64,000 nt of DNA from the sequence record OR538032.1; one strand, written 5' to 3'. The number at the start of each line of letters is the position of its first letter. Within the stretch, counting starts at the first letter, position 1. The translations under genes were made by a program, and so were the position numbers. The notes below the pieces were generated by a model, which saw only the letters and a program-made list of their open reading frames with translations, was not told the DNA's origin and ran no database searches. Shown here in pieces: positions 4,709 through 62,435 of the stretch.

Positions 4709-5590
4709 ATGATTATATTCGAAGATATTAATCCGCTGTGTGAAGCATTTGATCGCCCAGCACCATACAAATGGGATTCTATGTACAACGAAGCCCGATT
4801 TACGGTTGGGAACGTGCAGTATGTTGCGTTTATCAAAGATAATGACACAGCAAGAGGTTTAAGTCTGTATGTGGCATTTCAGCGTCGTGATAACGCAACT
4901 GGTCAATGGACTCACTCACTTGCTAAAGGCTCGCCGAAAGACGCAATGACGGTATTGAGCACAATACTGGCAGCAACATTTGACAAGGCATCAAAAGTTG
5001 AACCGAATGAAATTACATTCAGTGCATTTCGTGACGCAGAGGACGAAGACGCAAATAAGCGTTTTAGACTGTACAAGCGTATGGCTGAGCGATACGCAAA
5101 GCAAATGAATTACACAGTTCATATCACTGGTAATAGCTTCACACTAACAAACAACAATCCACCTAAGATCAGACGACTGCACAATGACGGCATTCACAAA
5201 GAAGATGAACTTACATACGTAAATTTCCCTGCTTGTAATGCATTCACATGGGCGAAGATTTTCTGGCTCGACAATGACGGCGATTACATCAAACTTACAT
5301 TGCCTCACGGTCGTATTCACATTGTGAGAAAATCAAGTGACGTGATTGAAATCGAAGCAATTACACCGAAAGGTCGTTTTGACAATCTAGATTCAGATGA
5401 GATTTGGATGTCGATGTTATCTGATATTAAAGTGAAAGCTAGAGGCGGAAGCACATTTACTATATCAGAGAAAGGCGCGATTTTAGATGCCGGTGATATG
5501 ATTTTGTGTGAGCAAGGTACGTTTTATTACCTAAGTTCTGAAGATGATTTCAAAGAAATCTGGGGATATGAAATCGACTCGATTGAATAA
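4709..5590 (+). CDS. putative internal head protein, paralog family member A
   Basis: Late promoter; N-terminus MIIFEDINPLCE; shares SLAKG..KDAMTV and KRFRLYKRMAER with 40523. Confidence 0.75.
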   Translation: MIIFEDINPLCEAFDRPAPYKWDSMYNEARFTVGNVQYVAFIKDNDTARGLSLYVAFQRRDNATGQWTHSLAKGSPKDAMTVLSTILAATFDKASKVEPNEITFSAFRDAEDEDANKRFRLYKRMAERYAKQMNYTVHITGNSFTLTNNNPPKIRRLHNDGIHKEDELTYVNFPACNAFTWAKIFWLDNDGDYIKLTLPHGRIHIVRKSSDVIEIEAITPKGRFDNLDSDEIWMSMLSDIKVKARGGSTFTISEKGAILDAGDMILCEQGTFYYLSSEDDFKEIWGYEIDSIE

Positions 5591-5591
5591 G

Positions 5592-5618
5592 AAAAGGGAG
5601 CAATTTGCTCCCTTTTTT
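5592..5618. terminator. bidirectional terminator
   Basis: AAAAGGGAGC-AATTT-GCTCCCTTTTTT between convergent genes. Confidence 0.9.
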
Positions 5619-5620
5619 GA

Positions 5621-7285
5621 TCATGGTGTCAGAGGACTACGTTCTTTCACTTTGCGGTCTTCGTCGATTTCAATATCAACAACTCGCATGAAGTTAGCAA
5701 CTTGCGCTAACTCACTCAAACGTTCCTGCTTTTTGTAAGCAGACAGGACGCCGCTTTTCGATGAATTGTCTTTGGCTTTCAAGCGAATCACCGCATCGAA
5801 TTCTGATAATTGAACAACGTCGGCTTCGAACATCGTATTACGGTTGATGATGAAATCACAATCGCCTTTCTTCCCGTATTTGCCTGGTGCTAAAACAGGT
5901 AACCCGTCAGACTCAATAACAAACACAACGTTCAGTTTTCTGTCAGATTCGAGCATATCACGCATAATTGATTTGCTATTCTTGCTCGTCGCGTTGACGA
6001 TTGTTTTCGCGCTAGATTCAACAAAGTCACATACAACAAATGGATCAGTTGATGATGTGATGAACGCAGTTGAAACGAACGCGCCAGATTCAAGAATCGA
6101 GCCGACACGTTTGCTAGACATTTCACAACCACGATATAGCGTAACGCCATTCGACACCTTACCAGCTTCATAGAAAGCTCGGTCTAAGCGAGAAATTGCA
6201 TCCCTAACCTTTTCATCACCTGCGCCGTGAACTAACTCTTCATTGACCTTCCACGAATAACGAGACGCAGAATAGCGAGAAATTGCAGCTTGAGTAAGAG
6301 AAGATAGACCAGCATATGAATCTTCTTGCATCATTTGCAACGATAATTGGTCATATTGCTTCTCAAACGCACGTGAACGGGCTTTTAACAGTGCGCCGCA
6401 TACTTCGCTAATCAAGTTAGCTTTAACGCCCTCAGAGCGTGCAGCGTCGATATATGGGTTCATTCGTTCTGCTACATCAACAAGGTCGATGTTCATATCA
6501 ACAATTGCTTGAGCAGCGTTAGCCAATTTCGTTAGACCGTCAGTTGCTGCCGCTTCTGTTAATTGCTGCTTGATAGATGCACTGACCCGCGCTTCCATTT
6601 GTGGCATTTGTAGAATTTGATTTGGGACGCGAACGGCAGGGTTTTCTTCTACCCATTGACCTAGAACATCATCTTCATAATCATCATAGCCAGCATCGGC
6701 AGTCACGATGATTGTTTTCTTGCTTGAAATGTCAGTCTCTTTCGCCATTTTAGCAGCAAGAATATTGATTGTTTCTTCGGTTGCTTCGACGAGTTTATCA
6801 GCGTCATAGCCGGGTTTCGTGATCACGAAGAAGCTGAAATCTTCAGCCATTTCATTATCACCGACGTTCATGATTTTAGTCGTTTCGCAGCCGTATCGAA
6901 GTTTCTTGAACAGCGTTTTAACACGCATGTCGAACATTTTACCGCTACCGATCTTTTGAATACGCATAGACACAGCGTTGGCACGTGTTTTCAACATGAA
7001 ACTTTGGATCAATTTAACCAATGTTTCTTGAAACTTTTCTTGGTCTCCCATGTCACGGATGGTTAATCCGCCTTTTTTGCCTCGCATTGCTGAGACAGTA
7101 CAGAACCACGAACGTTTTCCACGATTTCCGATGTCTGATTTTGTTTTAGTTGTGAACGAAACTACAACGTCACGAGCTTCGCCTTTCATATCGATCACAA
7201 AGAATTTGTTTTCTTTGGTCGAGCGAGCCGGATAGTAGTCGTACGTTGCGCTCATGTTTTCAGTTAATTGTTGAAATCCAATCAT
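5621..7285 (-). CDS. alt: Alt-like ADP-ribosyltransferase-fold protein
   Basis: C-terminal ART motifs TLYRG, FITSS, PG...DCDFIINRN; next to g30 and antisense, as for T4 alt. Confidence 0.75.
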   Translation of the reverse strand: MIGFQQLTENMSATYDYYPARSTKENKFFVIDMKGEARDVVVSFTTKTKSDIGNRGKRSWFCTVSAMRGKKGGLTIRDMGDQEKFQETLVKLIQSFMLKTRANAVSMRIQKIGSGKMFDMRVKTLFKKLRYGCETTKIMNVGDNEMAEDFSFFVITKPGYDADKLVEATEETINILAAKMAKETDISSKKTIIVTADAGYDDYEDDVLGQWVEENPAVRVPNQILQMPQMEARVSASIKQQLTEAAATDGLTKLANAAQAIVDMNIDLVDVAERMNPYIDAARSEGVKANLISEVCGALLKARSRAFEKQYDQLSLQMMQEDSYAGLSSLTQAAISRYSASRYSWKVNEELVHGAGDEKVRDAISRLDRAFYEAGKVSNGVTLYRGCEMSSKRVGSILESGAFVSTAFITSSTDPFVVCDFVESSAKTIVNATSKNSKSIMRDMLESDRKLNVVFVIESDGLPVLAPGKYGKKGDCDFIINRNTMFEADVVQLSEFDAVIRLKAKDNSSKSGVLSAYKKQERLSELAQVANFMRVVDIEIDEDRKVKERSPLTP

Positions 7286-7318
7286 TTTTATAGACTCACC
7301 CTTTAGAAAATATATGAG

Positions 7319-7326
7319 TATTTATG
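7319..7326 (-). promoter_or_regulatory. late promoter variant
   Basis: CATAAATA on - strand upstream of alt-like. Confidence 0.6.
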
Positions 7327-9028: not shown

Positions 9029-9268
9029 ATGATAACGATATACACAATTCCTAACTGTGACGGTTGTCGTCACGCTATCGCCCTCTGTAAGTTCAAACAC
9101 GTCCCGTATACTGTAATCGAGTTACAGTCACAGACTGACATCGACCAATTACATCAAAAGCTTGGTGGCAATCGCAATATTCGCGTTCCTCTGGCTATGC
9201 ATGGTGACACATACATCGGTCACCTGCCTGAATTGAAGAAATGGGTTGATGAACAGACGTATAAATAA
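9029..9268 (+). CDS. glutaredoxin
   Basis: IYTIPNCDGC active site; VP motif; YIG. Confidence 0.9.
   Translation: MITIYTIPNCDGCRHAIALCKFKHVPYTVIELQSQTDIDQLHQKLGGNRNIRVPLAMHGDTYIGHLPELKKWVDEQTYK
9260..9267 (+). promoter_or_regulatory. T4-type late promoter
   Basis: Exact TATAAATA. Confidence 0.85.
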
Positions 9269-9326
9269 AAGAAATTACGTACATTCTCTCCGCTGAAATG
9301 CGGCAATAAATTAAAGGAATCAAACA

Positions 9327-10223
9327 ATGACTGTATCTAATAGTAACGGTTTACCAGACATTGTTACTGTTCAAAAACGACTATATCCGCTGATCTTCAC
9401 GGAAATCGTTTCTGAACAGCCAACAAAGCAACCCGTTGCAACTGCTTACGGCTTTAAAGCTGTACCTGAAGCTGATGACGGCAGCGGCTGGACACAATTT
9501 GGGTTTAGACTTGATCGTTGGTATGCTCAAGTTGAATCTTCAAAAATGAAGACTGAAATCTCTCTTGAAACGCTGCAAGATATGCAAGCACTTGGTGTTA
9601 GTAATTCAGTGATCGTAGACTCACTAGCTGACCAAATTGCTGATGAAATCAATACGTCGATTATCGGTGCGTTGAATAGCATTTCAACTGTTGGTGCTGC
9701 ACTAACTCTGACGGGTAATACTGATTTTGAAAAAGGTCAAGATCTTTATACGAAAGTACACCTAGCAGCGTCTGAAATTGAAAAAACAACTGGTTGTAAA
9801 GGCACATATGTCGTTGCGGGCGGTAAATGTTTCGGTTATTTGACTGGTTGTGGTGTTGTACAGCGAGTTGGCGAATCGGACGTTTACAAAGCATGGTCTG
9901 GTTTATACATCGTACACGACAAATACGCAACAAGCGATTACGTGACTGTAGGTGTTAAGAAAGACATGGGTGATTATGAAATCTCAAGTCTAGTATTCAG
10001 CCCGTATCAATTCGACCAAGCGAATGACGGTGCGATTGCTTATCAATACAAGGGCACTGACCCGAAATCATTCCACCCTGTGTATGGTGTTATTGCTCGT
10101 TACGCACTAACTGTTCCGCCACTAGAAGACAATCAGACTGGTGCAGTTGAGATTGATTGGTCGAACTTAGGTGCGCTTGCTAATAGCTCAAAGCTTTCAT
10201 ACACATACGCAGTAACAGTATAA
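9327..10223 (+). CDS. 24: gp23/gp24-family capsid protein, probably head vertex gp24
   Basis: Segments resembling gp23/24 (IVSEQPTKQP; ISLETLQDMQAL; LADQIADEIN); late promoter. Confidence 0.7.
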   Translation: MTVSNSNGLPDIVTVQKRLYPLIFTEIVSEQPTKQPVATAYGFKAVPEADDGSGWTQFGFRLDRWYAQVESSKMKTEISLETLQDMQALGVSNSVIVDSLADQIADEINTSIIGALNSISTVGAALTLTGNTDFEKGQDLYTKVHLAASEIEKTTGCKGTYVVAGGKCFGYLTGCGVVQRVGESDVYKAWSGLYIVHDKYATSDYVTVGVKKDMGDYEISSLVFSPYQFDQANDGAIAYQYKGTDPKSFHPVYGVIARYALTVPPLEDNQTGAVEIDWSNLGALANSSKLSYTYAVTV

Positions 10224-10231
10224 GGTGTGAC

Positions 10232-10744
10232 ATGAAAAATCATTATGTAGATAATAAAGCTCTATACGCATCACTATGCGAATGGAAAGACGAAATGAAT
10301 AAGAATCCTGATGCGACAATCCCAGTACCTGATGTGGTCGCGATTAGCATCATGAAGATTAGCGAGAACCTGTCTCGCCGTTACAACTTTAGTGGTTACA
10401 CTGCTACGTGGAAAGAAGAAATGATTGGTGACGCAATCGAACATTGCTTGCGTTACATCAAAAATTTCGATACTGATAAGTACAATAATCCACACGCTTA
10501 CATCACTCGTATCTGTTTCAATGCGTTCGTGCAACGCATTAAGAAAGAAAGAAAAGATACAGCGATTAAATATAAAGTATTCTTATGTGATTCGTCTAAC
10601 TACACAGTTGAAGGCGAAGAGACTGATTTCGAGTTTCTTCAGCAAATGTTAGAGCGTGTCAATTCTTACGAGTCTGGCAAAACGGCTAAAGCTCAACCAG
10701 ATGAACAGAAAGAACCACTTAACTTACAGAAATTTTACGATTAA
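10232..10744 (+). CDS. 55: late transcription sigma factor gp55
   Basis: HYVDNKALY, FSGYTATWKEEMIGDAIE, NPHAYITRICFNAFVQRIKKE. Confidence 0.97.
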   Translation: MKNHYVDNKALYASLCEWKDEMNKNPDATIPVPDVVAISIMKISENLSRRYNFSGYTATWKEEMIGDAIEHCLRYIKNFDTDKYNNPHAYITRICFNAFVQRIKKERKDTAIKYKVFLCDSSNYTVEGEETDFEFLQQMLERVNSYESGKTAKAQPDEQKEPLNLQKFYD

Positions 10745-10753
10745 GGAATTAAC

Positions 10754-12199
10754 ATGTTAGGTAACTTTGACTCATTTCTGAGTGAAAATCGCCGTCAAAC
10801 TCAGGGTGGAAAAATCTACCCTAAGTTTGGTCAAGTTATTGTTGAGCTAGGCACTGCATCTACTGAGTTCAGCAAAGGCAAAGGCGTTGAAACAACTATC
10901 GGCATGATGGAGAAGGCAAATGAGCTTAAATCTATCATGAACAATAAACTGGCTGAAGATAAAAACGTCGATGAGAAACATTTCGACATCAATCTGAGCG
11001 AGAACGTAAGCACGGTTAACCTGCTTATGGAAAACGAATTCTTGGCGCTGCCAGCTCATGAGCTACAGCAAGTCAAATCAATGATCATGTGTACTGAAGC
11101 ACGTCTTCCTAGCATCGTGATTAAAGGCGGTTCATTGGATCAAGTTGTAGCTGAAGCAACGAAACTAGGCTACAAGAAAAGTGACATTCACGTTGTTTTC
11201 CCGATGCGTGAAATGAAAATCAATCTTGCTGACTCTGACAAGCTTGTTATTGAATCTCTATCAATTGACGACAATTCAGCGTCTGAGATTCTTTCAATGG
11301 CTGAAAACATCGAGCTTGGTGACGTTTATGTGACTGTAGAATCGGTTGATTCTAAGGCTGAACTGTCTGAAATCACTGAACTGAAGATTAAATCTGGTAA
11401 AAATGCGCTGACACTAGCTGCACTTAACCGCAAGATCATGGATCAGTTTATCGTGAAAGAAGCGAAAGAAGTTTCATATGCACGTGAGCGTAAAGAAGAC
11501 ACTGGTCTCCCAATGCTTGAAGGGTTCAAGGCATACGATCTGAAACAGAACATCACCATGATTGAACATGCTCAGAACGCATTCACAAAAGAGATTACAG
11601 TAGCTCCGCTATCTTCGACTGCGTGGCAAAATCTTGTTGATGTTAAAGAAGCTTACTTCGATAACGGTTGGAAACTGAAGCACAACAATACAAGCATCGT
11701 TCTAACAAACGCTGAACACGCAATGCGTGCTGGTCGTGTTTGTGAAGAATATCGAGTCGAGCTATCTGAAGCAGGTTATCCTCTTCTTGATATGATCGCA
11801 ATGATGGAAAGCAAAGGCATGACTCGCTTTGATTGTAAATCATTTGCTGAATCAATGATGAAATTCGACGGCTGTGTTACGCCAGAGCGCCAGACTGTGA
11901 CTGCATTTGTTACTGAATCTGCTAGTAATCGCGTATTTCACCCGAATATTATGTCAAGCCTACGTCCTGTGACCGAAATGGTTGATGATGTTGACGGTCT
12001 AATTCGTGCGCTTGCTAATGATCAGTTCAGTACGTTCAAAATCGGACAATCATTCTCTGAATCAATGCTTGACCAAGAAACGCTATACTCTATGATGGAA
12101 AGCATTGTTTCTGATGGTGTTGATGTATCAGTGGACGGGACTTTGATTGAATTCAAAGTGAATGCAACCAATTACCTAATCAATATCGACATCAAATAA
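10754..12199 (+). CDS. hypothetical protein, putative internal head protein
   Basis: N-terminus MLGNFDSFLSE; downstream of the late promoter. Confidence 0.7.
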   Translation: MLGNFDSFLSENRRQTQGGKIYPKFGQVIVELGTASTEFSKGKGVETTIGMMEKANELKSIMNNKLAEDKNVDEKHFDINLSENVSTVNLLMENEFLALPAHELQQVKSMIMCTEARLPSIVIKGGSLDQVVAEATKLGYKKSDIHVVFPMREMKINLADSDKLVIESLSIDDNSASEILSMAENIELGDVYVTVESVDSKAELSEITELKIKSGKNALTLAALNRKIMDQFIVKEAKEVSYARERKEDTGLPMLEGFKAYDLKQNITMIEHAQNAFTKEITVAPLSSTAWQNLVDVKEAYFDNGWKLKHNNTSIVLTNAEHAMRAGRVCEEYRVELSEAGYPLLDMIAMMESKGMTRFDCKSFAESMMKFDGCVTPERQTVTAFVTESASNRVFHPNIMSSLRPVTEMVDDVDGLIRALANDQFSTFKIGQSFSESMLDQETLYSMMESIVSDGVDVSVDGTLIEFKVNATNYLINIDIK

Positions 12200-12207
12200 G
12201 GTGAATC

Positions 12208-12855
12208 ATGAAACAATTTTGTAATTTTTTAGCTGAAGTTCAGAAATACAGTTCAGCGGCTACGTCGATTCGCGGCAAAGAAGTTGCTGCATTGGTTAAA
12301 TTGTTCAAGTCAGGCATGTTCGTGCCTGGCGGAACAGCACTTGACTACGGCGCGGGCAAATACGGTCGTAATGCTGAATTTCTTCGCAGTGAAGGCATTC
12401 GCACTTACGCATACGACAAATTCAATGGGACATCGGCTGATGGTTGGAACGCAGTTAGCTTAACTATCCCAAATGGTGAGACATTCGATACCGGCTTCAC
12501 GTCATACGTATTGAACGTTGTTCCTGAAGAAATCGAAGCAGAAATCATCCGTGATGTTGAGTCTCGTACACGCGGTAAAGTGTTCCATATTACACGCGGT
12601 ACTGACATCACTCAGACTGTATTCAACGTAATCAGCGGTAAGAGCAAGAATGACGTAATGATGCAATTCATTGCTCAAGAATATCCAGAGATTTACGGTC
12701 AGATTGTCGCGAACGGTGGGACGAAAGAATTGGCTAAAGAGATTGCAACCCGTGGAGTTGTAACAGCTAAAGACAGTTTCCAACGTATTCCAGACCTATC
12801 GAAATACGGTTACAAGAAATCTGGTTCAGGTGCTTCGGTAGTGTGGACAAAATAA
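12208..12855 (+). CDS. class I SAM-dependent methyltransferase, putatively virion-packaged
   Basis: ALDYGAGKYGRN, AYD, SYVLNVV; N-terminus MKQFCNFLAE. Confidence 0.8.
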   Translation: MKQFCNFLAEVQKYSSAATSIRGKEVAALVKLFKSGMFVPGGTALDYGAGKYGRNAEFLRSEGIRTYAYDKFNGTSADGWNAVSLTIPNGETFDTGFTSYVLNVVPEEIEAEIIRDVESRTRGKVFHITRGTDITQTVFNVISGKSKNDVMMQFIAQEYPEIYGQIVANGGTKELAKEIATRGVVTAKDSFQRIPDLSKYGYKKSGSGASVVWTK

Positions 12856-25074: not shown

Positions 25075-25375
25075 TGTAGATAAATTTGCAATCGGGGGCG
25101 CAGAAATGCGCCCTGAGATTGGCGACGTGTGTCGTGACCACTTTCCGACTTCGAGAAATTGGCATGAGGATTGGAACACGACTGCGATTAATTACGTGAA
25201 ATACGAGAATGATATTCACCTCGACATTTCATCTTGGTACGTAGATGCAGAGAACAATGTTCTGTCAATCACGTTGAAAAATGAAGAGCCGTCGATTCAC
25301 GGGATGATTGTTCCACCTCGTGTTTGCCTTGACCTGACTAAGGTCAGAGAAATAATCACAGAAATCTTGAAATAA
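25067..25375 (+). CDS. hypothetical protein
   Basis: TTG start overlapping the g43 end. Confidence 0.6.
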
Positions 25376-25379
25376 GACG

Positions 25380-25408
25380 TTGACAGTGTGCATGAACTCG
25401 TGTACACT
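25380..25408 (+). promoter_or_regulatory. sigma70-type promoter inside an inverted repeat
   Basis: TTGACA-N17-TACACT; IR ACAGTGTGCA/TGTACACTGT. Confidence 0.65.
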
Positions 25409-25438
25409 GTTAAAAGACTATTTTGAGAGGAAAAGACA

Positions 25439-26584
25439 ATGACTACACAAGAACTATACAATCATTTGATGACACTGACCGAAGACGCCGAAGGCAAGTT
25501 CTTCTTTGCTGATCACATTTCACCGCTCGGTGAGAAACTTCGCGTGTTTAGCTATCACATTGCGTCGTACTCTGACTGGCTGCTGCCGGGTGCTCTTGAA
25601 GCGCGTGGTATCATGTTCCAGCTTGACGAACAAGATAAGATGGTTCGTATCGTGTCTCGCCCGATGGAGAAGTTCTTCAATCTGAACGAGAATCCCTTTA
25701 CGATGGATCTTGACTTGACGACTACTGTTCAGCTAATGGACAAAGCTGATGGTTCTTTAATCAGTACGTATCTGACTGGTGAGAACTTCGCGCTGAAGTC
25801 AAAAACAAGCATCTTCTCTGAGCAAGCCGTTGCAGCGAATCGCTACATCAAATTGCCAGAGAATCGCGACTTGTGGGAATTCTGTGACGACTTAACTCAA
25901 GCAGGTTGTACAGTCAACATGGAATGGTGCGCGCCAAATAACCGTATTGTTCTTGAGTATCCAGAAGCGAAGCTGGTCATCTTGAATATTCGTGACAACG
26001 AAACAGGTGATTACGTGAGCTTTGACGACATCCCGCTACCTGCGTTGATGCGTGTCAAGAAGTGGTTAGTCGATGAGTATGACCCTGAAACTGCACACGT
26101 AGACGATTTCGTTGAGAAATTGCGTGCGACTAAAGGCATCGAAGGCATGATCTTGCGCCTAGCAAACGGTCAATCGGTGAAAATCAAGACTCAGTGGTAT
26201 GTCGATCTGCACTCGCAAAAAGACTCTGTGAACGTTCCGAAGAAGTTGGTGACAACTATCTTGAACAATAATCACGATGACCTGTACGCGCTGTTTGCCG
26301 ACGACAAGCCGACAATCGACCGCATTCGTGAGTTCGATTCTCACGTATCGAAGACTGTATCTGCATCGTTCCACGCTGTAAGTCAGTTTTACGTGAAAAA
26401 TCGACATATGTCGCGCAAAGATTATGCAATCGCAGGTCAGAAAGCACTTAAACCGTGGGAATTTGGCGTAGCAATGATCGCGTATCAGAAGAAAACCGTC
26501 GAAGGCGTGTACGAAGCTTTAGTCGGTGCGTATCTGAAGCGACCAGAACTACTCATTCCTGAGAAGTATCTGAATGAGGCATAA
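25439..26584 (+). CDS. rnlA: RNA ligase 1 (gp63)
   Basis: ARGIMF, EKFFNLNE, KADGSLI, EGMIL, KIKTQWY. Confidence 0.95.
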   Translation: MTTQELYNHLMTLTEDAEGKFFFADHISPLGEKLRVFSYHIASYSDWLLPGALEARGIMFQLDEQDKMVRIVSRPMEKFFNLNENPFTMDLDLTTTVQLMDKADGSLISTYLTGENFALKSKTSIFSEQAVAANRYIKLPENRDLWEFCDDLTQAGCTVNMEWCAPNNRIVLEYPEAKLVILNIRDNETGDYVSFDDIPLPALMRVKKWLVDEYDPETAHVDDFVEKLRATKGIEGMILRLANGQSVKIKTQWYVDLHSQKDSVNVPKKLVTTILNNNHDDLYALFADDKPTIDRIREFDSHVSKTVSASFHAVSQFYVKNRHMSRKDYAIAGQKALKPWEFGVAMIAYQKKTVEGVYEALVGAYLKRPELLIPEKYLNEA

Positions 26585-30606: not shown

Positions 30607-30790
30607 ACGACTATACCCACATGAAGTTGATCACGAACTACAGCGTCGCGACGTTTGGTTGAAAGCGTGGTGTCATACTGCTAACGCTAATGACTGTAAA
30701 GAAACATCAACTGCAACAAGCTATGCTGATGCGTGTCTGGCTGCATTTGACCGTCGTTTTGAAGCTATCGAGGTAATTAAACATGACTGA
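30599..30790 (+). CDS. hypothetical protein
   Basis: SD before ATG 30599. Confidence 0.65.
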   Translation: MAKRLYPHEVDHELQRRDVWLKAWCHTANANDCKETSTATSYADACLAAFDRRFEAIEVIKHD

Positions 30791-31181
30791 TTTTGATATT
30801 GCACTACTTAACCCGACTATCATCAAGTCAACTGAAATCGCAGGTCATAACTTCGGTAACAAAGTTATCGAGATTGTGAGTGATCACATTGACGGCGATG
30901 ACATGGATAACTTCATTGAATTCATCGTTGAAGCTGAAGCACGAGAGCGTGAGCACCCATATGTGGGTCATTTCTACGGTGATTTGTTAGTCATGAGCTT
31001 GTCTGAAGACCGTCATCACTTCGAAGCACGTATGTCTGACGAAGACATTGCGAATCTGACAATCGCGATTGATGATGCATTCATTCAATACACAAATGAG
31101 TTTATTGAATGGTACAAGCAGAAAGCGCGAGAGTTCTTCGATGACGATGAATTGGAATTCATCATTGAAAACGAAATCTAA
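30783..31181 (+). CDS. acidic hypothetical protein
   Basis: SD GAGG. Confidence 0.75.
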   Translation: MTDFDIALLNPTIIKSTEIAGHNFGNKVIEIVSDHIDGDDMDNFIEFIVEAEAREREHPYVGHFYGDLLVMSLSEDRHHFEARMSDEDIANLTIAIDDAFIQYTNEFIEWYKQKAREFFDDDELEFIIENEI

Positions 31182-31182: not shown

Positions 31183-31210
31183 AAAATCCCGTCTTAATGG
31201 CGGGATTTTT
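31183..31210 (+). terminator. intrinsic terminator
   Basis: AAAATCCCGTC-TTAAT-GGCGGGATTTTT. Confidence 0.85.
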
Positions 31211-31218
31211 AGTTTTCA

Positions 31219-35039: not shown

Positions 35040-36093
35040 ATGGTCTGTAGATCATGTGATTTGAACCCATTCGTTCCCATGTACCTAGATTCATGCGATT
35101 TTTCATTTCAACGAAGAATGCGGGGTTTGCTCTAATGTCATCAAGTGGCAGTGCAACAACACCTTCAGTTTTATGCGCCAATAGCTCTAGTTTATCAAGC
35201 AAATCAGACGTTGTACGACCGTCATATTTGAATTGACTGAACCAATAACCAATCTTACTGAATTTCGTATCTCTTGTGTATTTCACATCAAAGCCTTTCA
35301 GAGCATACGCTAAGTTACTTTCTTTACCGTGAAACGGCTTGCGATATGCGCTATGTTCAGCACCAGCACGAGCAAGCAATCTCTTCTTAGCTGCGTCTGG
35401 TAGATTGAACCACCCATCAAAGTTTTTCTTGAAGTTCAACATCCATGCTTCTGGCGTAGCTGGTGAGCCTTTGAAGTATGCTTTCGTATCAGCAATGGCT
35501 TGTGCATAGCGTGCGTTAATCTCATGAGAATAGTTCTGATATTCGTCGTGAGACGCTTCGTGACCGCTTTTAGCGTGACGGATGAACTCTTTATCAATGT
35601 ATCCGCGTTTACGCCCTGAGTGTTGATACACGCCCTCTGCGTCGCTTGTCTCGAAGTCTTCAATGTCACCAGAACGATAGTTGTCGTAAGCGTGTTGCAG
35701 TTCATGTAATGCAGTGCTATACAACTGTGGTTTCTGCAATCTGAATTTCGCCATGATTTGACTAACTGCTGTTACTCCAGTTATATCCACGACAAGCTTG
35801 AGATACCCTGCTTCTGTGATCGAGTCGTCATGTAATTTGCCATTCCAAACACCGAGTTCGGTTGGGTTATTATTGTCTAACTTCAGATATGCTAGAATAC
35901 CTTCAGCTAGTAATGCATCGAACTCACTCTCACCAGTTCTGATATTCAGAGTTTTTGTGTTGACGGATAGTTTATTTGGATCCCATGGTGCTTTACTTAG
36001 AGCGCCTTCTAACTGGCGTTCCAATGTATCGACGATGGTTTTTGACGCTTGTTCTAATGCGCGTTGTGATTGTACGTTTTCAAAAATAATCAT
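35038..36093 (-). CDS. zincin-like metallopeptidase, putative internal head protein
   Basis: LHELQHAYD...SHEINAR; N-terminus MIIFENVQ; CCTAAATA at 36126-36133 (-). Confidence 0.7.
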   Translation of the reverse strand: MIIFENVQSQRALEQASKTIVDTLERQLEGALSKAPWDPNKLSVNTKTLNIRTGESEFDALLAEGILAYLKLDNNNPTELGVWNGKLHDDSITEAGYLKLVVDITGVTAVSQIMAKFRLQKPQLYSTALHELQHAYDNYRSGDIEDFETSDAEGVYQHSGRKRGYIDKEFIRHAKSGHEASHDEYQNYSHEINARYAQAIADTKAYFKGSPATPEAWMLNFKKNFDGWFNLPDAAKKRLLARAGAEHSAYRKPFHGKESNLAYALKGFDVKYTRDTKFSKIGYWFSQFKYDGRTTSDLLDKLELLAHKTEGVVALPLDDIRANPAFFVEMKNRMNLGTWERMGSNHMIYRP

Positions 36094-36111
36094 CTTTTTT
36101 CTCGAATTCGG

Positions 36112-36140
36112 TTGACTGTATTACTTATTTAGGTTAATAT
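36112..36140 (+). promoter_or_regulatory. class I promoter overlapping a divergent late-type box
   Basis: TTGACT-N17-TAATAT, ATCGAAACGA at 36148. Confidence 0.7.
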
Positions 36141-39309: not shown

Positions 39310-39603
39310 ATGAGAGAAGCAATTGCATTATTAAGCAACACGAGAATGGGATATACTGACATTAGCGCATTTGGCGATCCAGTATTATATGTTCATGCGG
39401 GACATGAGACGGTATTAAAAGTGCAATACACTGAAGATTGCTACTCATTTTACGACTACAGAAGCAAGTATCTTTATACAGAGCAGTCCATCGACGACTT
39501 AGAGATACATTTGAAATCAATAGATGTCGGGTTAGACGATGATCTACCGTTAAATGGGAACATCGACAAAGACACGATACCAGACGGGGAATTTTTAGAA
39601 TGA
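39310..39603 (+). CDS. hypothetical protein
   Basis: ORF. Confidence 0.65.
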   Translation: MREAIALLSNTRMGYTDISAFGDPVLYVHAGHETVLKVQYTEDCYSFYDYRSKYLYTEQSIDDLEIHLKSIDVGLDDDLPLNGNIDKDTIPDGEFLE

Positions 39604-40520
39604 AGTTTAGTGAATATCAAAGAATAAACGAATCTCTGGATCGCCCTGCCAATTATAAACTGGTTAGAGAACTCCCAAACTTAAACGTGTATGCGTTTCA
39701 AGTTGATGGTGTTTATTATGAAATAGACATTCAGAAATCAAACATACGAGAGCCTAATGGGATGCAGTCAATGAAAGCTGAAGTCTCATTCAAAGCACTC
39801 GACGGTAGTGGTTATCAACTAACCAAAAAAGACGATAAAACGGCACGAATTGTACTATCAACCGTAGTTGATGCTATCTTCAGCTTCGTACGCGAATACA
39901 ATCCTGCTCAAATATTATATTCTGCATTCAACGATGCTGATCCGTCAGATGCGGCTAAACGACTTCGTTTATATCAGATCATGACTAAAGCAAAACTGCG
40001 TGAATTCCCCGAATATGATTTCCGAAACGTTGGGCGTGATTTCATCGTATACGATGTCAATTACCAAAAACGAGTCGAGGAATTTTCAAGAAGAGCACGT
40101 AGACCAGTGGGATATGAAGAAAGATCAGACCACGTTGAAGTGAATTTATCACATGCCAACGCCTTTGCGTTTATACGAGCGTTTGGGGTAAATGAAGGCG
40201 ACTCGAAGAGCGGCGTACTAGGTAAAGGTCGAGCTTTCGTAGGAGCAACAAACGAAATTAAAGCACGTCTGAGAGTAGATCGTGTGGTGTATGAAATGTC
40301 TGACAGAGAAGGGTGGCTTGCGGCTCTTCAGCACCCTATTTTTGACTATGGCGAGGGTCCTGAAGTTGATCGAACATATCTAGTCGGGGCATTTAAAAAC
40401 TTCTATATCGTGTTGACTAGTCAAACAAGTCTAAAAATATACACCGATGATGCTGCGTTTACAAAATATGTGAATGCTTTCGACGCGCCATGGTTAAACC
40501 CAGAAATAATGGAATCTTAA
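39600..40520 (+). CDS. putative internal head protein, family member C
   Basis: MKFSEYQRINESLDRPA; YSAFND.D..DA.KRLRLY. Confidence 0.75.
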   Translation: MKFSEYQRINESLDRPANYKLVRELPNLNVYAFQVDGVYYEIDIQKSNIREPNGMQSMKAEVSFKALDGSGYQLTKKDDKTARIVLSTVVDAIFSFVREYNPAQILYSAFNDADPSDAAKRLRLYQIMTKAKLREFPEYDFRNVGRDFIVYDVNYQKRVEEFSRRARRPVGYEERSDHVEVNLSHANAFAFIRAFGVNEGDSKSGVLGKGRAFVGATNEIKARLRVDRVVYEMSDREGWLAALQHPIFDYGEGPEVDRTYLVGAFKNFYIVLTSQTSLKIYTDDAAFTKYVNAFDAPWLNPEIMES

Positions 40521-40522
40521 AA

Positions 40523-41374
40523 ATGAAATTTAGCGAATATCAAAACGAGCTAACGGAAGCATTTGATCGACCTGCACAGATCACAGCACGTCGTGGCAAT
40601 CAGAGTTTTTTCATGATTGGTGACACTGAGTACATGGTCGGGTTGTATTACGACGACTCGAAAAAATCACTCGGAGTTGACTTCATGCATAAGCCAGGTG
40701 ATTCAGCAACGTACCACTACAGCTTAGCCAAAGGCAACTCAAAAGACGCCATGACTGTTTTTGCAACCGTGATTGCAGAAATCAAGCGACTTATGAACGA
40801 CAAACCGGTCAATCGAATCAGCTTCAGTGCGTTTCAAGACTCTGACAGTTCAGATGCTAAAAAGCGTTTTCGATTGTACAAGCGCATGGCAGAACGCTTC
40901 AGCAAAGAACTCGGGTTCAGAATGACCACTTATGGTGATTCTTTCGTATTGACACGTGTAAACCCTGTTGCAGTCAACGTAGAAGAACCAACTGGTTATG
41001 ATACAGCGTGGGGTACTGAAATGCTCGATCTGCGTGAAGTCAACGACGCTGCAATTGCCAAAGTCACAGAAGGTGATGGTGAATGGCGTTTGAATAACTG
41101 GAACAAGCTGATTGTTCGCAACGGAAAAGTAACGCTAACATCGGGTCCAATTCGAATGTCAGACGCTTGGTACGATGCGTTTTACGACTTAGAATGGTAT
41201 CACGATGAAGAAGGCGAACAATGGTTCGATGATGAACAGAAGATCGCGATCATCAATGGTAAAGTTTGGGTCGTCAATGACATGGAAATTACTATTTGGC
41301 CAAGTATTGAGAAATTAGAATTGCAAAGTGACTCGGAATTATCAAGCGGGACACGTCAATTGCTTGGATATTAA
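40523..41374 (+). CDS. putative internal head protein, family member D
   Basis: MKFSEYQNELTEAFDRPA; FSAFQD.D..DAKKRFRLYKRMAER. Confidence 0.75.
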   Translation: MKFSEYQNELTEAFDRPAQITARRGNQSFFMIGDTEYMVGLYYDDSKKSLGVDFMHKPGDSATYHYSLAKGNSKDAMTVFATVIAEIKRLMNDKPVNRISFSAFQDSDSSDAKKRFRLYKRMAERFSKELGFRMTTYGDSFVLTRVNPVAVNVEEPTGYDTAWGTEMLDLREVNDAAIAKVTEGDGEWRLNNWNKLIVRNGKVTLTSGPIRMSDAWYDAFYDLEWYHDEEGEQWFDDEQKIAIINGKVWVVNDMEITIWPSIEKLELQSDSELSSGTRQLLGY

Positions 41375-41378
41375 TCAG

Positions 41379-41403
41379 AAAGGTAGCTTCGGCTACCTTT
41401 TTT
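41379..41403 (+). terminator. intrinsic terminator
   Basis: AAAGGTAGC-TTCG-GCTACCTTTTTT. Confidence 0.9.
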
Positions 41404-51685: not shown

Positions 51686-52234
51686 ATGGCATTTATGAAA
51701 AAAGAGAAAGACGCAAAAGACATTACCGAAGCAGATATGCAGTACGCAATTGCAGTACAAAGCGTATGGATTCACAAACGCTACACAGCGATTATTCCAA
51801 ACTGTTACACCAAATGGGATAATGAAGCTGATCTGTTTGCTATTCGTCCAAGTGGTCTTTGTGATGAGATTGAAATCAAAGTATCCAAAGCTGATTTTCG
51901 AATTGATGAGCAAAAATCAGTAAAGGTCATCGACGAAAGTACACCAAATCTACGATGGCATCGTTACGAAGACGTTCCAAAACGCACAGCATTGCAAGAT
52001 GGTAAAATGTCGAACTACTTCTGGTATGCATTCCCTAAAGGGCTTGTAGACCACTCTGAAGTCCCAGAATGGGCTGGTATAATCGAAGTGGATGGATTTC
52101 TGAACGCCAGAGAAGTAAGAATGCCAAAACGTCTGCATGGTGGCAAGATGACAATCGAAGAGCAACTAAAACAAATCAAGAAACTTGGCTATCGCTTCTG
52201 GAATCTGGTTAAAAAGAACAAAAAGGAACAGTGA
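51686..52234 (+). CDS. PD-(D/E)XK-fold protein, MmcB-like
   Basis: EADLFAI...EIEIKVSKADF..D; NYFWYAFP. Confidence 0.6.
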   Translation: MAFMKKEKDAKDITEADMQYAIAVQSVWIHKRYTAIIPNCYTKWDNEADLFAIRPSGLCDEIEIKVSKADFRIDEQKSVKVIDESTPNLRWHRYEDVPKRTALQDGKMSNYFWYAFPKGLVDHSEVPEWAGIIEVDGFLNAREVRMPKRLHGGKMTIEEQLKQIKKLGYRFWNLVKKNKKEQ

Positions 52235-57947: not shown

Positions 57948-57960
57948 TGTAAAAAAAGGG

Positions 57961-57990
57961 TTGACTACGGTCAGCCCTTTCTTGTATTAT
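57961..57990 (+). promoter_or_regulatory. class I promoter fused to a terminator
   Basis: TTGACT-N18-TATTAT, ATCGAAACGA at 57997. Confidence 0.75.
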
Positions 57991-58027
57991 TCTCATATCG
58001 AAACGAAACACCGAAAGAGAGAATAAT

Positions 58028-58342
58028 ATGAAATCTGACCTACGCACTATCCAAACTCTAGTAGAACAAAAAGATGTAGCAATCGTTGTTAAAGAACAGT
58101 ATCGAAATGCACTTGCATTCGCATACGGCTGCATGACTGGCGTTCAGCGTCAAGTATACCGAGACTACCACATGAGCGTGCTGGTTGAGAGATTTGACCT
58201 TGAATTCTGTGAAGCAAACGAAGTTGTCTTACCTTACGGTGAGTTGAAGTCTGCAATCAAATTCATCAAAGATAGCTTGAGCGCGTCTGACTATGACGAA
58301 CTGAAAGCACTATTTCAATTCAACATTAAACTGCCAGAGTAA
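58028..58342 (+). CDS. early hypothetical protein
   Basis: AGAGAG RBS. Confidence 0.75.
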   Translation: MKSDLRTIQTLVEQKDVAIVVKEQYRNALAFAYGCMTGVQRQVYRDYHMSVLVERFDLEFCEANEVVLPYGELKSAIKFIKDSLSASDYDELKALFQFNIKLPE

Positions 58343-58347
58343 GAAGC

Positions 58348-59034
58348 ATGAAACGATTTAAGAAACACATTAAAAAGTATGACGAGCATGGCGTAGTTCA
58401 GTATAATATGCTGATGATATTCGCTTTGATAGTCACAATATCAATGTCAATCGCACTTGTTGCGTCAAATATTCTGTTTGCATTTGAGCTTTCAGCTAGT
58501 GACGCTAACATCAAAACACCCGGTGATGCATTCTGGACGGTTTGGATGGCTATGAGTACAATTGGATTTGGTGATCATTATCCCGTAACGACTGGTGGTA
58601 GATTTGTTATTGGTTCTATGTTTGTCGTTGGTGCGTCGCTTATTGGTCTTAACATCGGTATCGCGAATGCGTGGATTACATCTAAGTTCGACAAAAGCAT
58701 ACAGAATCGCGTGTTGAAGAGTCAAAACGATGCTCTATTGCAGAAATTAGATCGTCTTGAGACACATCTAGGCATCGGTCAAGAGGTGTTGTTTTCGAAA
58801 GATGCTCATGGTATAGATACAATGATTGACCAGTATTTTGACAGCAACGACAAAGCAGAGAGATTTGTTACACTCGGTCAAGATGATAGCGGTCGATATG
58901 TCGTGGCAATAAATCAGCAAATCATCGAAACACAAAAGACATCATTGAAATGGCACACGTTCATTAAAGAAGATGATGCGACGAAATTCTACAAAGACAC
59001 AAGTGAACTATTCCACACGGAGCTATTCATATGA
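58348..59034 (+). CDS. 2-TM potassium channel (KcsA-like) with C-terminal domain
   Basis: DAFWTVWMAMSTIGFGDHYPVTTGGR between two TM helices. Confidence 0.9.
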   Translation: MKRFKKHIKKYDEHGVVQYNMLMIFALIVTISMSIALVASNILFAFELSASDANIKTPGDAFWTVWMAMSTIGFGDHYPVTTGGRFVIGSMFVVGASLIGLNIGIANAWITSKFDKSIQNRVLKSQNDALLQKLDRLETHLGIGQEVLFSKDAHGIDTMIDQYFDSNDKAERFVTLGQDDSGRYVVAINQQIIETQKTSLKWHTFIKEDDATKFYKDTSELFHTELFI

Positions 59035-59528
59035 TTCGTAATATCTTATTTGCTGCTCTTGCAGCTATGACACTCGCAGCATGTGATAACAATTCTGCGA
59101 CATTAGACACAAATGCTTACTATGCTGAACAAGAACAGCTATTAGTTGAAGCACCGACGACTGAAATGTTTGATACACAGCCACCAGTTGTTCAACCTGT
59201 ACAACAACCTGTACAACAACCTGTGATTATTCAGCAAGACGACGGGTTTGATCTAGGTGACGCAGCGATTGGTTTTGTTGCTGCTGAATTGATAGATGAA
59301 GTTGGTGATGCTTTCGAATCTAAGCATAAGAAGACTTATGTCGCGCCAGTGAAACAGCCTGTAATTAAGAAAGTTACACCGTATCAAGCGCCTAAAAAGC
59401 CTGTAGTAGTTAAGCCAACTGTAGTCAAACCGAGCACAGTTGAGACGAAACCTGAGAAAAAAGAGGGTTTTTTCAAGAAAGCAGTCAAAAAGGTTAAAAA
59501 AGTTAAGCGTAGTAAACGCAGAAAATAA
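59031..59528 (+). CDS. lipoprotein with Q/P/V repeats and Lys-rich tail
   Basis: Lipobox LAAC; 12-bp tandem repeat CAACCTGTACAA at 59193-59225. Confidence 0.75.
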   Translation: MIRNILFAALAAMTLAACDNNSATLDTNAYYAEQEQLLVEAPTTEMFDTQPPVVQPVQQPVQQPVIIQQDDGFDLGDAAIGFVAAELIDEVGDAFESKHKKTYVAPVKQPVIKKVTPYQAPKKPVVVKPTVVKPSTVETKPEKKEGFFKKAVKKVKKVKRSKRRK

Positions 59529-59553
59529 AAAAGGGAGCATTCGCTCCCTTTTT
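59527..59553. terminator. bidirectional terminator
   Basis: AAAAAGGGAGC-ATTC-GCTCCCTTTTT. Confidence 0.9.
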
Positions 59554-59554: not shown

Positions 59555-60097
59555 CTATTTGTTTTTTGATAAAACATCTAGAATTCTAGCTAATTCAGAT
59601 TCGATGTGCTCAAGCTCCATTAGATATTCATCCGATTGCTTGATGTCACTACGTAGAAGACCTTTTGAAGTCGCAATATCAACGTCGCTATCTAGACTAC
59701 CACGCAATTTACGTACCAAGAACAACGCACGATTCAAATCACGAGTGAATACGTTCACTGTCTTGTCAGTGATCTTGTCTTCTGGCATACTCTGATATTT
59801 GTTCAGTTTTCTCATGGTTTTCTTCAGTTCTTTGAAGTCTTTACGCGCTTGACCGCCAGCGAATAACACGCCACCAATCAAACCATTAAGTCCCATTGAG
59901 ATACCAGCCCATGCCGCTAATGGCAATGCGATAGAAAGCCCTGCTGTACCCGGTGCTGCTGCAATTGAAGCACTTGCCATACCTACAAAGCCACCCACTG
60001 CTGCGCCGATTGCAGCACTATTCTTAGCCCATTGACCGATAGTTGCTTCTTTCAACTCATCTGAATTCTTGAATTCATCAAATGTCTTTAGTTCCAT
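59555..60097 (-). CDS. putative internal head protein with Gly/Ala hydrophobic hairpin
   Basis: MELKTFDEFKNSDELKE; SD AAGGTGA before ATG 60097. Confidence 0.7.
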   Translation of the reverse strand: MELKTFDEFKNSDELKEATIGQWAKNSAAIGAAVGGFVGMASASIAAAPGTAGLSIALPLAAWAGISMGLNGLIGGVLFAGGQARKDFKELKKTMRKLNKYQSMPEDKITDKTVNVFTRDLNRALFLVRKLRGSLDSDVDIATSKGLLRSDIKQSDEYLMELEHIESELARILDVLSKNK

Positions 60098-60826: not shown

Positions 60827-61104
60827 TTATGAACTTCTTTCAAATAAGCATGAATCTAGCGACTGATTCATCAATTAACCCAGACGAAGCTTGGGCTGAT
60901 AAGCAATTGATTATTGCTTCTAGTCATGAAATGGCTCGAAAACTTGCCGACGCACGCGAGAAAGGTCGTCATGGTTGGCATGACCCTGATGTGTGCTCTA
61001 TCGACTATCTCTATGAGTTGCGCGATAAAGCACTTGAAGACAATGATCATGTCAGTGTGATGAACTACACTGCAATGATCGCTATGCGGGAGAGTGTACA
61101 ATGA
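60823..61104 (+). CDS. hypothetical protein
   Basis: KLADAREKGRHGW...VSVMNYTAM. Confidence 0.7.
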   Translation: MIMNFFQISMNLATDSSINPDEAWADKQLIIASSHEMARKLADAREKGRHGWHDPDVCSIDYLYELRDKALEDNDHVSVMNYTAMIAMRESVQ

Positions 61105-62141
61105 ACGTACTATTCACGAGTCTATTTGGCTCGAAACTATATGGCACAGACACGCCAGAGTCAGACACTGACTATAAAGCCGTCTATCTACCTGAGTTGC
61201 GAACGCTACTTCGTGGTGTTGCAATAAAGAACTCAGTGCATTCAACTGGCAAATCGTTCGAGAAGAACGGCGCAGACGATGAAGACTTCGAATACATCCC
61301 TGTTCAAGTGTTCATGCGTGACTTTCTGGGCGGTCAGTCATATGCAATCGAGTTAGCATTCAATGCACTACAGAACCCTGATGACTGTAAGCCAGAGTTC
61401 TACAACATGTGTAAAGAAATGACTCGCAAGTACTTGACATCAAACGTCAAAGCAATGACTGGCTATGCGCTTAACCAAGCACAGAAGTACGGCATCAAAG
61501 GTACTCGACTGAACAGCCTTATGCAATTTGCACGTGCTGTAGAGACGCACAACGTCGATCCTAAAGCGAAGTTGGGTTCGAGCCCTGAATTGTGTAAGCA
61601 ACTATGGGAACTGTGTGCAGAAGACGCTCACGTGCGTTTTCAGTGGTATCATGGGCCCAAGACTAAAGACGCAAGCGACTTGAAAGACCCTGCGTTCAGT
61701 GTGCTTGAGAAAGTATTCGGTCTTGAGATCACGTTTGAAGAAGCTGCCGGTCGTCTTGAGAAGATGATGAGCAAATACGGCGCTCGTGCATACCAAGCGC
61801 GTGCTGCAAGTGGCTCAGACTGGAAAGCAATCTCTCATGCTATGCGCGTGATCGATCAAGCAATCGACATACTGACAGTTGGTAAGCTTGAGTTTCCGTT
61901 GAAGCACGCTGCGTTCTATCGTGACGTGAAACAAGGTAAATACAAGTGGGAATACGTGTCTGAAGTGCTGCAAGAGCGCCTTGAATTGCTAGAAAAAGCA
62001 AAAGATACAACGTCACTTCCACATCACACGCCTGATTTGGTTGCGAGATTTTACATCTGGTACGATGATTACCTTGATGAGTTTTATTTCCCTTGTGAAA
62101 TGACTGATGAAGAAGTCAAACAAATGCTAGGCGCGTACTAG
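61101..62141 (+). CDS. pol-beta superfamily nucleotidyltransferase (T4 nrdC.11-like)
   Basis: FGSKLYGTDTPESDTDY (hGS...DxD); YGIKG.RL; WKAISHAMR. Confidence 0.8.
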   Translation: MNVLFTSLFGSKLYGTDTPESDTDYKAVYLPELRTLLRGVAIKNSVHSTGKSFEKNGADDEDFEYIPVQVFMRDFLGGQSYAIELAFNALQNPDDCKPEFYNMCKEMTRKYLTSNVKAMTGYALNQAQKYGIKGTRLNSLMQFARAVETHNVDPKAKLGSSPELCKQLWELCAEDAHVRFQWYHGPKTKDASDLKDPAFSVLEKVFGLEITFEEAAGRLEKMMSKYGARAYQARAASGSDWKAISHAMRVIDQAIDILTVGKLEFPLKHAAFYRDVKQGKYKWEYVSEVLQERLELLEKAKDTTSLPHHTPDLVARFYIWYDDYLDEFYFPCEMTDEEVKQMLGAY

Positions 62142-62142
62142 T

Positions 62143-62150
62143 TATAAATA
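62143..62150 (+). promoter_or_regulatory. T4-type late promoter
   Basis: Exact TATAAATA. Confidence 0.85.
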
Positions 62151-62174
62151 CGTTAAACAAACTAGGAGTTTAAC

Positions 62175-62435
62175 ATGAAAGGTTTTAAAGGTTTCAACGA
62201 TTATTTCAAGAAAGGTGAAGTCAAGCTGCAAGAAACTGAACAAGAGTTTCACGAGCGCGTTGTCAAGCATCGTAAAGTAGATGACAAACGTTATCCAGAC
62301 TTATCTAAGGCTGGACTAGAGGGTCCATACACTGACCTAAATGGTAAAGTGTATTACTATGACCCACGTGAAGGCATGTACTACGATCCAGACACTGACA
62401 TTTACATCACTGCAAAAGATTTACGTTTACCGTAA
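62175..62435 (+). CDS. small late protein with YYDP repeats
   Basis: LEGPY..NGKVYYYDPREGMYYDPDTDIY; MKGFKGFNDYF N-terminus. Confidence 0.75.
   Translation: MKGFKGFNDYFKKGEVKLQETEQEFHERVVKHRKVDDKRYPDLSKAGLEGPYTDLNGKVYYYDPREGMYYDPDTDIYITAKDLRLP

Follow-up and report, generated by a model that had tools for sequence, protein, structure and literature searches.

Candidate head-internal cargo proteins with T4-type capsid-targeting N-termini in a Vibrio phage

Ten genes in the final 64 kb of the sequence record of Vibrio phage PG216 encode products that open with a short segment resembling the capsid-targeting propeptide of phage T4 internal proteins. This stretch (64,000 nucleotides of OR538032.1, 100% identical to PG216) is the whole of the DNA analysed and is called the window here; the N-terminal segment is called the tag, and the genes are named after the window position of their first codon, except for one Alt-like gene. 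We consider it likely that the ten genes encode head-internal proteins, loaded into the prohead through this T4-type N-terminal propeptide and acting on ejection. Because T4-type tags coincide with the presence of 8/9 of the protein families in particles of a sister phage, PG216 probably delivers preformed proteins to its host along with the DNA. The original prediction, which had proposed an injected payload from the DNA letters, is well supported as regards targeting and packaging, by two independent kinds of evidence not available to that prediction; binding to the core, the precise points of cleavage, ejection and all biochemical functions are inferred. The window is 99.9% identical to a stretch of KVP40 (NC_005083.2, ~26980–90980), a T4-like Schizotequatrovirus.

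N-terminal tags and their conservation

Translation reproduced exactly all ten N-termini that had been listed, and (L/I)xE was found at the expected place in 9/10 candidates, the exception being 35038–36093(−), whose N-terminus carries A-L-E at residues 12–14 and I-F-E at residues 3–5. Tag length varies from 5 to 20 residues across the candidates. Most show an aromatic pair three residues apart (Table 1), and 4709, the Alt-like gene and 36093 have F4 with I, L or V at position 7. In T4 IPIII, residues 4 and 7 are needed for targeting and residues 8 and 10 for processing, the prohead protease gp21 cleaves after L/I-X-E, and virion proteins have propeptides as short as 7 residues (Alt) and as long as 65 (gp23) (PMC9026906). 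Compared with sequences taken from the T4 record, 12208 agrees with all four IPIII determinant positions, and 10754 agrees when shifted by one.

The proposed processing machinery is encoded in the same genome, with gp20, gp67, gp68, gp21, gp22 and gp23 all annotated in PG216. In gp23 of the phage, LNE|A lines up with the maturation site of T4 gp23, and LIE stands at residue 8 of gp21 in both phages; the protease specificity that the proposal needs is therefore conserved. The tag motif is also matched by T4 gp2, a head protein entering with the DNA, and by gp24.2 (T4 record positions L004 4062–4886(−) and L005 11651–11929(−)).

Comparison with relatives (VH7D, D479, the outgroup F86 and later 6E35-1b) shows that residues around the tag determinants vary in diverged relatives while the tag persists. 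The (L/I)xE is present in all relatives examined bar one member of the 10754 family, which has Ala for Glu. In the ten-residue tag of the 12208 family, positions 3, 5, 6 and 9 vary and F/L4, F/Y7, L8 and E10 stay, and the mature protein opens with a highly conserved stretch right behind the tag. Members of the 10754 family that are only 37% identical overall still retain F5, F/Y8 and L9, and E11 is missing solely from the member with Ala. In the family of 4709, 39600 and 40523, named DUF6934 below, tags come in two lengths, five residues with IFE at the end and twelve with LxE, a 7-residue difference, and (L/I)xE always abuts a conserved AF(D/S/T)RP whatever the tag length; in 4709 itself the propeptide starts MIIFE and ends LCE immediately before AFDRP.

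To set these similarities against a background rate, we used internal decoy positions of the window genes (n=102 genes). A loose motif (an aromatic at residue 3–6, a hydrophobic residue at +3, and (L/I)xE closing no later than residue 21) was matched by 9/102 genes vs 2.15% of decoys (binomial p = 4e-4), or by 10 when the 40523 start is used, and a strict aromatic/aromatic version by 6/102 vs 0.63% (p = 5e-5), p-values that are indicative only because the motif was drawn up with the data already in view. Two independent checks agree with a real signal: over the remaining 180 kb of the genome the loose motif is at chance level (11/394 open reading frames, ORFs), and as a control the strict motif recovered IPI, IPII and IPIII from 54 kb of T4. 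A whole-genome six-frame scan with a tight ten-to-twelve-residue pattern gave five occurrences, namely 10754, 12208, one internal Met and two genes beyond the window, G299_136 and G299_156.

Chance resemblance in a gene-dense genome could in principle produce such matches. The triplet (L/I)xE alone is not enriched (23/102 window genes vs 17% of decoys), and two proteins fit the loose motif by chance, the phage DNA polymerase (one of the 9 matches) and T4 lysozyme. However, conservation of the tags together with particle proteomics refutes this explanation for practical purposes, and we regard it as very improbable.

Two candidates are annotated in KVP40 with starts further upstream, at 40490 (vs 40523) and at GTG 60106 (vs ATG 60097). 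We preferred 40523 and 60097 because PHROG alignments, F86 and 6E35-1b homologues and the ribosome-binding sites agree on them. Database starts lie upstream of the tag in KVP40.0116, KVP40.0150, F86_0088, F86_0178 and the 6E35-1b counterpart of 0391 (start pairs: window 40490/40523 and 60097/60106; L012 9605/9653; L014 12673/12739; L022 4439/4469), and among these upstream starts two annotated ATGs overlap or precede the late box.

Late promoters and particle proteomics

Exact TATAAATA late-promoter boxes occur only 3 times in the window on both strands, ahead of 4709, 62175 and gene 24, and 12 times genome-wide. The remaining ones precede gp25, fibritin, gp18, gp22, gp23 and helicase, as well as a tail-fibre-adjacent protein, a 71-aa unassigned ORF and one more small tagged gene. 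With the core TAAATA, five candidates (4709, the Alt-like gene, 31254, 36093 and 62175) have a box 29–39 nt upstream of the ATG, so that at 25–45 nt upstream the core is found in 5/10 candidates vs 2/92 other genes (p = 6e-5); the two non-candidates, one of them a spanin, have it 36–40 nt upstream. The core is distant for 60097 (130 nt upstream) and for 10754 (187 nt, inside gene 55), and for 39600, 40523 and 60097 the box is not convincing. The proposal that all ten genes lie downstream of TAAATA-core boxes is thus borne out for the five with their own well-placed box, and 'all' was too strong, as this is only half of the set.

The late boxes are kept in F86 and 6E35-1b. Terminators bound 31254 on both sides, 36093 downstream and the 39600/40523 pair downstream of 40523. 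Late transcription is predicted from these boxes for the genes that have them, and transcripts begun at the gene 24 late promoter could run on into 10754 and 12208.

Table 1. Candidate cargo genes and associated features of the window, with spectral evidence from particles of the sister phage 6E351A (counts in two replicates).
Feature	Position	Strand	Details	6E351A orthologue	Counts
Late box TATAAATA of 4709	4678–4685	+	Exact T4-type, 31 nt before the 4709 ATG, directly after GC-rich hairpin with T-run
4709, DUF6934-family paralogue 1, 293 aa	4709–5590	+	phrog_6387; family alignment	VP6E351A_0094	16/61
Alt orthologue, 554 aa	5621–7285	−	phrog_802, E = 7e-89; propeptide ends LTE at residue 9	VP6E351A_0095	122/233
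Late box CATAAATA of Alt gene	7326–7319	−
Late box, gene 24-like head protein and gene 55	9260–10744	+	Box 9260–9267; gene 24-like 9327–10223; gene 55 10232–10744	Orthologue of gene 24-like head protein	90/145
10754, 481-aa protein without assigned function	10754–12199	+	Tag F5, F8, L9, E11	VP6E351A_0102	Absent from particle list
12208, predicted class I SAM-methyltransferase fold, 215 aa	12208–12855	+	Tag F4, F7, L8, E10, exact T4 IPIII pattern	VP6E351A_0103	31/79
31254, self-contained late unit (terminator, box, gene, terminator)	31183–32739	+	Terminator 31183–31209; CTAAATA 31220–31226; gene 31254–32708; terminator 32714–32739; tag F4, F7, LDE at 13–15	VP6E351A_0134	58/109
36093, self-contained late unit (box, gene, terminator)	35010–36132	−	CTAAATA 36132–36126; gene 36093–35038; terminator 35041–35010	VP6E351A_0140	18/25
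39600 and 40523, two tandem DUF6934 paralogues and terminator	39600–41402	+	39600–40520, tag F3/Y6, ends INE at 11; 40523–41374, tag F3/Y6, ends LTE at 12; terminator 41377–41402	Single orthologue VP6E351A_0154 (phrog 6387)	37/51
60097, 180-aa protein	59555–60097	−	Hydrophobic segments ~27–48, ~52–75; tag F6, F9, LKE at 15–17	VP6E351A_0188	7/21
Exact TATAAATA box and 62175, 86-aa protein	62143–62435	+	Box 62143–62150; gene 62175–62435; tag F4, F7, LQE at 18–20	VP6E351A_0192	6/13

The virion mass spectrometry proposed as a check on packaging exists for a sister phage. Tandem mass spectrometry of particles of the Schizotequatrovirus 6E351A lists 94 proteins (Supplementary Table 3), and the PHROG of each 6E351A gene is given in Supplementary Table 8 (bioRxiv 10.1101/2024.12.24.630238); we mapped orthologues by PHROG, size, position and strand. 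The published data place 8/9 candidate families in the particles, the 10754 family being the one missing, vs 11/~101 other genes of the syntenic stretch (p = 1.5e-6). Candidates make up six of the top seven proteins by counts in this stretch, with the gene 24-like head protein second. The detected families carry the same tags and boxes in 6E35-1b, the sister of 6E351A, including both box and tag of 62175, which are kept in F86 as well. The tables give protein counts only, and the authors comment only on Alt, FolE, Acb1 and NARP2, leaving targeting tags and gp21 sites unmentioned (10.1101/2024.12.24.630238).

Beyond the window, the genome has at least three further genes of this type. The genome-wide tag scan that had been suggested, run as the tight pattern combined with a late box, gave G299_136 and G299_156, both of which are supported by particle data. 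G299_136 (PG216 64347–65465) encodes 372 aa with a ten-residue tag (L4, F7, M8, E10), and 27 nt upstream is a TAAATA core; it was chosen by motif and late box, and its orthologue VP6E351A_0357 was then found in the particle list with 18/4 counts. G299_156 encodes 68 aa with a net charge of +11 and has a late box, and its orthologue 0380 is in the 6E351A particle list. A motif match without a late box, phrog_13829, has an orthologue that is not in the 6E351A particle list, and motif matches without a late box elsewhere (including PG216 25333–25830 and 12184–12618) were taken as chance.

Small tagged proteins are also encoded in the tRNA region (PG216 80369–80575(−) and 81430–81609(−); 6E35-1b L022 4215–4469(−) and 5164–5412(−)). 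They are 59–84 aa long, one strongly basic (net +9 to +11), with tags that resemble those of the T4 internal proteins most closely of all and with late boxes 31–37 nt upstream, and their mappable orthologues, the 59-aa protein not among them, are in the 6E351A particle list. In 6E35-1b, two small tRNA-region proteins found in particles have tags that differ from those of T4 IPII/IPIII at only two to four positions. These tRNA-region proteins, whose genes lie outside the window, make the strongest case for being internal proteins of the classical kind.

Another explanation of tags and detections together is that the likeness reflects A/T-rich early codons (K, I, F, E) of well-translated late genes, and that the particle detections are carry-over of late proteins abundant enough to contaminate a crude preparation, with no specific targeting involved. 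The tags do consist of A/T-rich codons, and a preparation precipitated with polyethylene glycol (PEG) includes non-structural proteins. Yet the strongly expressed late genes gp23, gp22, gp18, fibritin and gp25 start differently, the (L/I) three residues before the Glu survives insertions and deletions, the tag fits four positions mapped experimentally in T4, candidates exceed bystanders by counts, and the metagenome-wide DUF6934 family bears a nearly T4 tag. We judge codon bias with carry-over to be unlikely.

The cargo proteins and the DUF6934 family

Of the cargo types that had been named, most could be matched to a protein. The ADP-ribosyltransferase (ART)-fold cargo is the Alt-like protein, a phrog_802 member whose homology to T4 Alt spans its length, with a BLASTP E = 5e-6 over the ART core and an N-terminal region that also aligns. 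In this low-identity alignment the catalytic Arg (YRG) and Ser-rich motif align with T4 Alt, and the E-x-E of T4 Alt aligns with D-C-D in PG216/KVP40 (~residues 470–480) and with E-N-E in F86. Because the E-x-E position is D-C-D, activity of the PG216/KVP40 Alt orthologue is uncertain, and it may be altered or lost.

The methyltransferase cargo corresponds to 12208, for which the structure model predicts a class I S-adenosylmethionine (SAM)-methyltransferase fold (pLDDT 81, with residues 1–25, the tag region, disordered). Foldseek with this model gave 167 PDB matches at E <= 1e-3, with SAM methyltransferases on top (probability 1.00, TM 0.45–0.54), and the family has an invariant D-x-G-A-G (glycine-rich motif I) and Y-A-Y-D. 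There was no Pfam match above threshold, and a profile search against PDB chains was also empty. An IMG/VR search with the single protein returned close relatives only, and one with the 12208 alignment found four distant homologues with N-termini that are not tag-like; the methyltransferase domain therefore occurs untagged elsewhere. Together with 10754, 12208 forms the end of a conserved four-gene block headed by gene 24 and gene 55, which is intact in D479 despite rearranged surroundings. Nine (L/I)xE sites occur in the 10754 protein, which may belong to the core and be degraded.

For the zincin cargo, 36093, an invariant HExxH was found and a fold match was not. The 351-aa family has invariant HELQH and HEINAR motifs (H130, E131, H134, H190, E191), both on helices of a model with pLDDT 87, in which residues 1–6 are coil and 7–33 helix. 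Since Foldseek with this model found no PDB match at E <= 0.001, 'metallopeptidase' is a putative assignment. The A-L-E at residues 12–14 was rejected as a likely cut site, lying within the confidently modelled conserved helix. Distant homologues of this family (P0015, P0017) have a C-terminal NUDIX fusion and longer N-termini.

The acidic cargo protein is 31254 (484 aa, net charge −70, weak HEAT match), and the hydrophobic-hairpin cargo is 60097, with its two hydrophobic segments. Just upstream of the 31254 unit, Met 30903, internal to 30783–31181, opens a perfect ten-residue tag pattern (F4, F7, I8, E10), which may be chance or an alternative start. Searches of the 10754, 31254, 36093 and Alt-like sequences against PDB chains gave nothing significant, PADLOC and NCBIfam gave no match for any of the ten proteins, and annotation searches gave no functional clue for 10754 and 62175.

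The three proteins 4709, 39600 and 40523 share an N-terminal DUF6934 (PF22028) domain. They score 17–22 bits against PF22028, under its 27-bit cut-off; a profile built from the window family found 1187 proteins among 1.84 billion representatives, and those that were tested match PF22028 well above the cut-off. Stand-alone members (~150 residues) nearly all start with a tag followed by (A/S)(F/L)D-x-P, the junction Glu being most often at position 9 or 10. Across 66 N-terminal junctions, the residue three before the cut is I in 33, L in 24 and V in 4 (57/66 I or L), and the ten-residue consensus of the stand-alone metagenome proteins, M-K-T-F-K-Q-F-I-T-E, has the T4 IPII/IPIII pattern with 7/10 identical residues. 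Within the literature searched, no earlier description connecting DUF6934 to the T4 tag seems to exist.

Large proteins of up to 2215 aa contain two to five DUF6934 repeats (P0046, P0053, P0056, P0058, P0063 and others), and each internal repeat opens with (L/I/V)xE and then (A/S)(F/L)D-x-PYPY. These may be polyproteins cut by the prohead protease, or the triplet may belong to the domain. A third 6E351A DUF6934 paralogue (0242) is also in particles. EST35_0349 of Pseudomonas phage PA5oct (MK797984.1, L013 2495–2920), a 141-aa protein that mass spectrometry identified in particles, shows weak similarity to the 4709 DUF6934 domain (28% identity, E = 2e-4). At the site of the second KVP40 DUF6934 paralogue, F86 has an extra 262-aa gene (L012 40762–41550) with a tag ending LNE at 9 and no PHROG or Pfam match.

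The tagged proteins could instead be gp21-cut prohead proteins that serve head assembly or DNA condensation, like gp67, gp68 and gp22, and are degraded or retained rather than acting as effectors. The gp68 of the phage carries a similar tag at its start (ISE ending at residue 6), and 10754 looks like a degraded core protein, lying in the gene 24–gene 55 block with its nine (L/I)xE sites and an orthologue absent from particles. The extreme acidity of 31254 points the same way, resembling that of T4 core-derived peptides. On the other side, a methyltransferase fold and an invariant HExxH suggest enzymes with substrates rather than scaffolds, eight families persist into mature 6E351A particles, and the fast-diverging, multi-copy DUF6934 family fits host interaction better than assembly. 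Furthermore, the Alt family is known to be ejected (PMC9026906). We consider such a head-internal role for the set rather improbable.

The ten candidates are dispersed among the replication genes of the window, which is devoted to replication and nucleotide metabolism (ligase, genes 47/46, 45, 44/62, 43, rnlA, pseT, 7-deazaguanine genes, rIIA/B). Nearly every gene is on the plus strand; of the four on the minus strand, three are candidates, as had been noted, and the remaining one is gene 49. An eleventh member, 51686–52234, was considered for its variable N-terminus followed by a conserved ITE|A, yet was dropped, its PHROG orthologue VP6E351A_0175 being undetected and a terminator lying between TAAATA box and ATG. 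Compared with KVP40 84923–87414, ~0.9 kb with a GIY-YIG homing endonuclease gene (KVP40.0146) is missing from the window at ~57950–59550, and a 228-aa ORF at 58348–59034 of the window is unannotated in KVP40.

Delivery model and comparison with known systems

If the ten proteins are packaged cargo that acts on ejection, late transcription would start from their own gp55-type boxes, or at the late promoter of gene 24 and run through into them. The first 5–20 residues, with their aromatic/hydrophobic pair three apart, would then bind the core (gp22, gp67, gp68, gp21) during prohead assembly, and gp21 would cleave after the Glu of (L/I)xE, freeing the mature protein within the shell. The mature protein would remain in the DNA-filled head and be ejected with the DNA, so that Alt and the methyltransferase-fold, HExxH, DUF6934 and other proteins could act before phage gene expression.

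Several observations weigh against this model. The motif is defined post hoc from the data. No TAAATA core of their own was found for 12208, 39600 and 40523. The mass spectrometry comes from a related phage, on particles that were PEG-precipitated and not gradient-purified, with low-count bystanders in the list (ligase 0/2, thymidylate synthase 1/3, dUTPase 7/10, FolE 13/7, and spanins too), and the counts of 60097 and 62175 are close to this bystander noise; the 10754 family, with its orthologue VP6E351A_0102, is missing from the proteins listed for 6E351A particles. In the model of 36093, the segment behind residue 6 is a conserved helix, making the A-L-E cut noted earlier unlikely. Lastly, the (L/I/V)xE-AFD junction may be partly a feature of the DUF6934 domain rather than solely a protease site, because the same junction starts internal repeats.

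What a phage brings in pre-made, ahead of any phage gene expression, determines how an infection begins, in the minutes when the host's restriction and further defences act. The known T4 cargo consists of three small proteins and Alt, and here tag plus late box picks at least 13 genes in one genome; most of the window families are supported by independent particle proteomics, and the set includes a predicted methyltransferase fold and a possible metallopeptidase, an unusual enzymatic make-up. About a dozen hypothetical proteins of a widely used, broad-host-range vibriophage group thereby become candidates for host takeover or counter-defence, and DUF6934 gains a first functional context. Full-text literature searches, whose scope did not include the KVP40 genome paper (PMC180978), returned no paper linking KVP40 to capsid targeting.

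More speculatively, the T4 tag may be a portable address label that marine T4-like phages attach to arbitrary enzymes, with DUF6934 as the most widespread cargo and the multi-repeat DUF6934 proteins as polyproteins from which the prohead protease would release many units within the head; we put this forward as a tentative idea that may well prove wrong. If true, head cargo would be predictable from sequence alone in thousands of uncultured phages. Short tags of this kind might also serve to bring foreign proteins into these large heads, a practice established with T4.

Heads of P1 (Dar proteins) and of the giant phages phiKZ and SPN3US (ejection or inner-body proteins) contain many N-terminally processed proteins that are delivered with the DNA, some with enzymatic domains. 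Those systems differ in their proteases, cut motifs and head lineages, and no sequence relation was found except for the weak link between DUF6934 and the PA5oct particle protein.

T4 Alt is an ADP-ribosyltransferase that is packaged in the head and ejected. The vibriophage protein shares homology over its length, a short propeptide ending (L/I)xE and an orthologue that is abundant in particles, and its gene is two genes from the ligase gene, as alt is near gene 30 in T4. It differs in lying on the strand opposite ligase, in being 128 residues shorter and in having D-C-D for E-x-E.

With IPI, IPII and IPIII the vibriophage cargo has no sequence relation, and most of it is large (180–554 aa), not basic and enzymatic-looking, from genes scattered among replication genes and with tags of 5–20 residues. 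What is shared with the T4 internal proteins is the ~ten-residue tag with aromatics at 4 and 7, I/L at 8 and Glu at 10, late expression as predicted for the genes with well-placed boxes, a genome that also encodes the gp21 protease and a scaffolding core, and unrelated mature parts behind a common tag. T4 ipI adjoins tRNA genes and 57B, and the small basic, near-identically tagged vibriophage proteins are likewise in the tRNA region. Since the proposed mechanism is that of T4, these genes would add a larger new set of members to a known mechanism.

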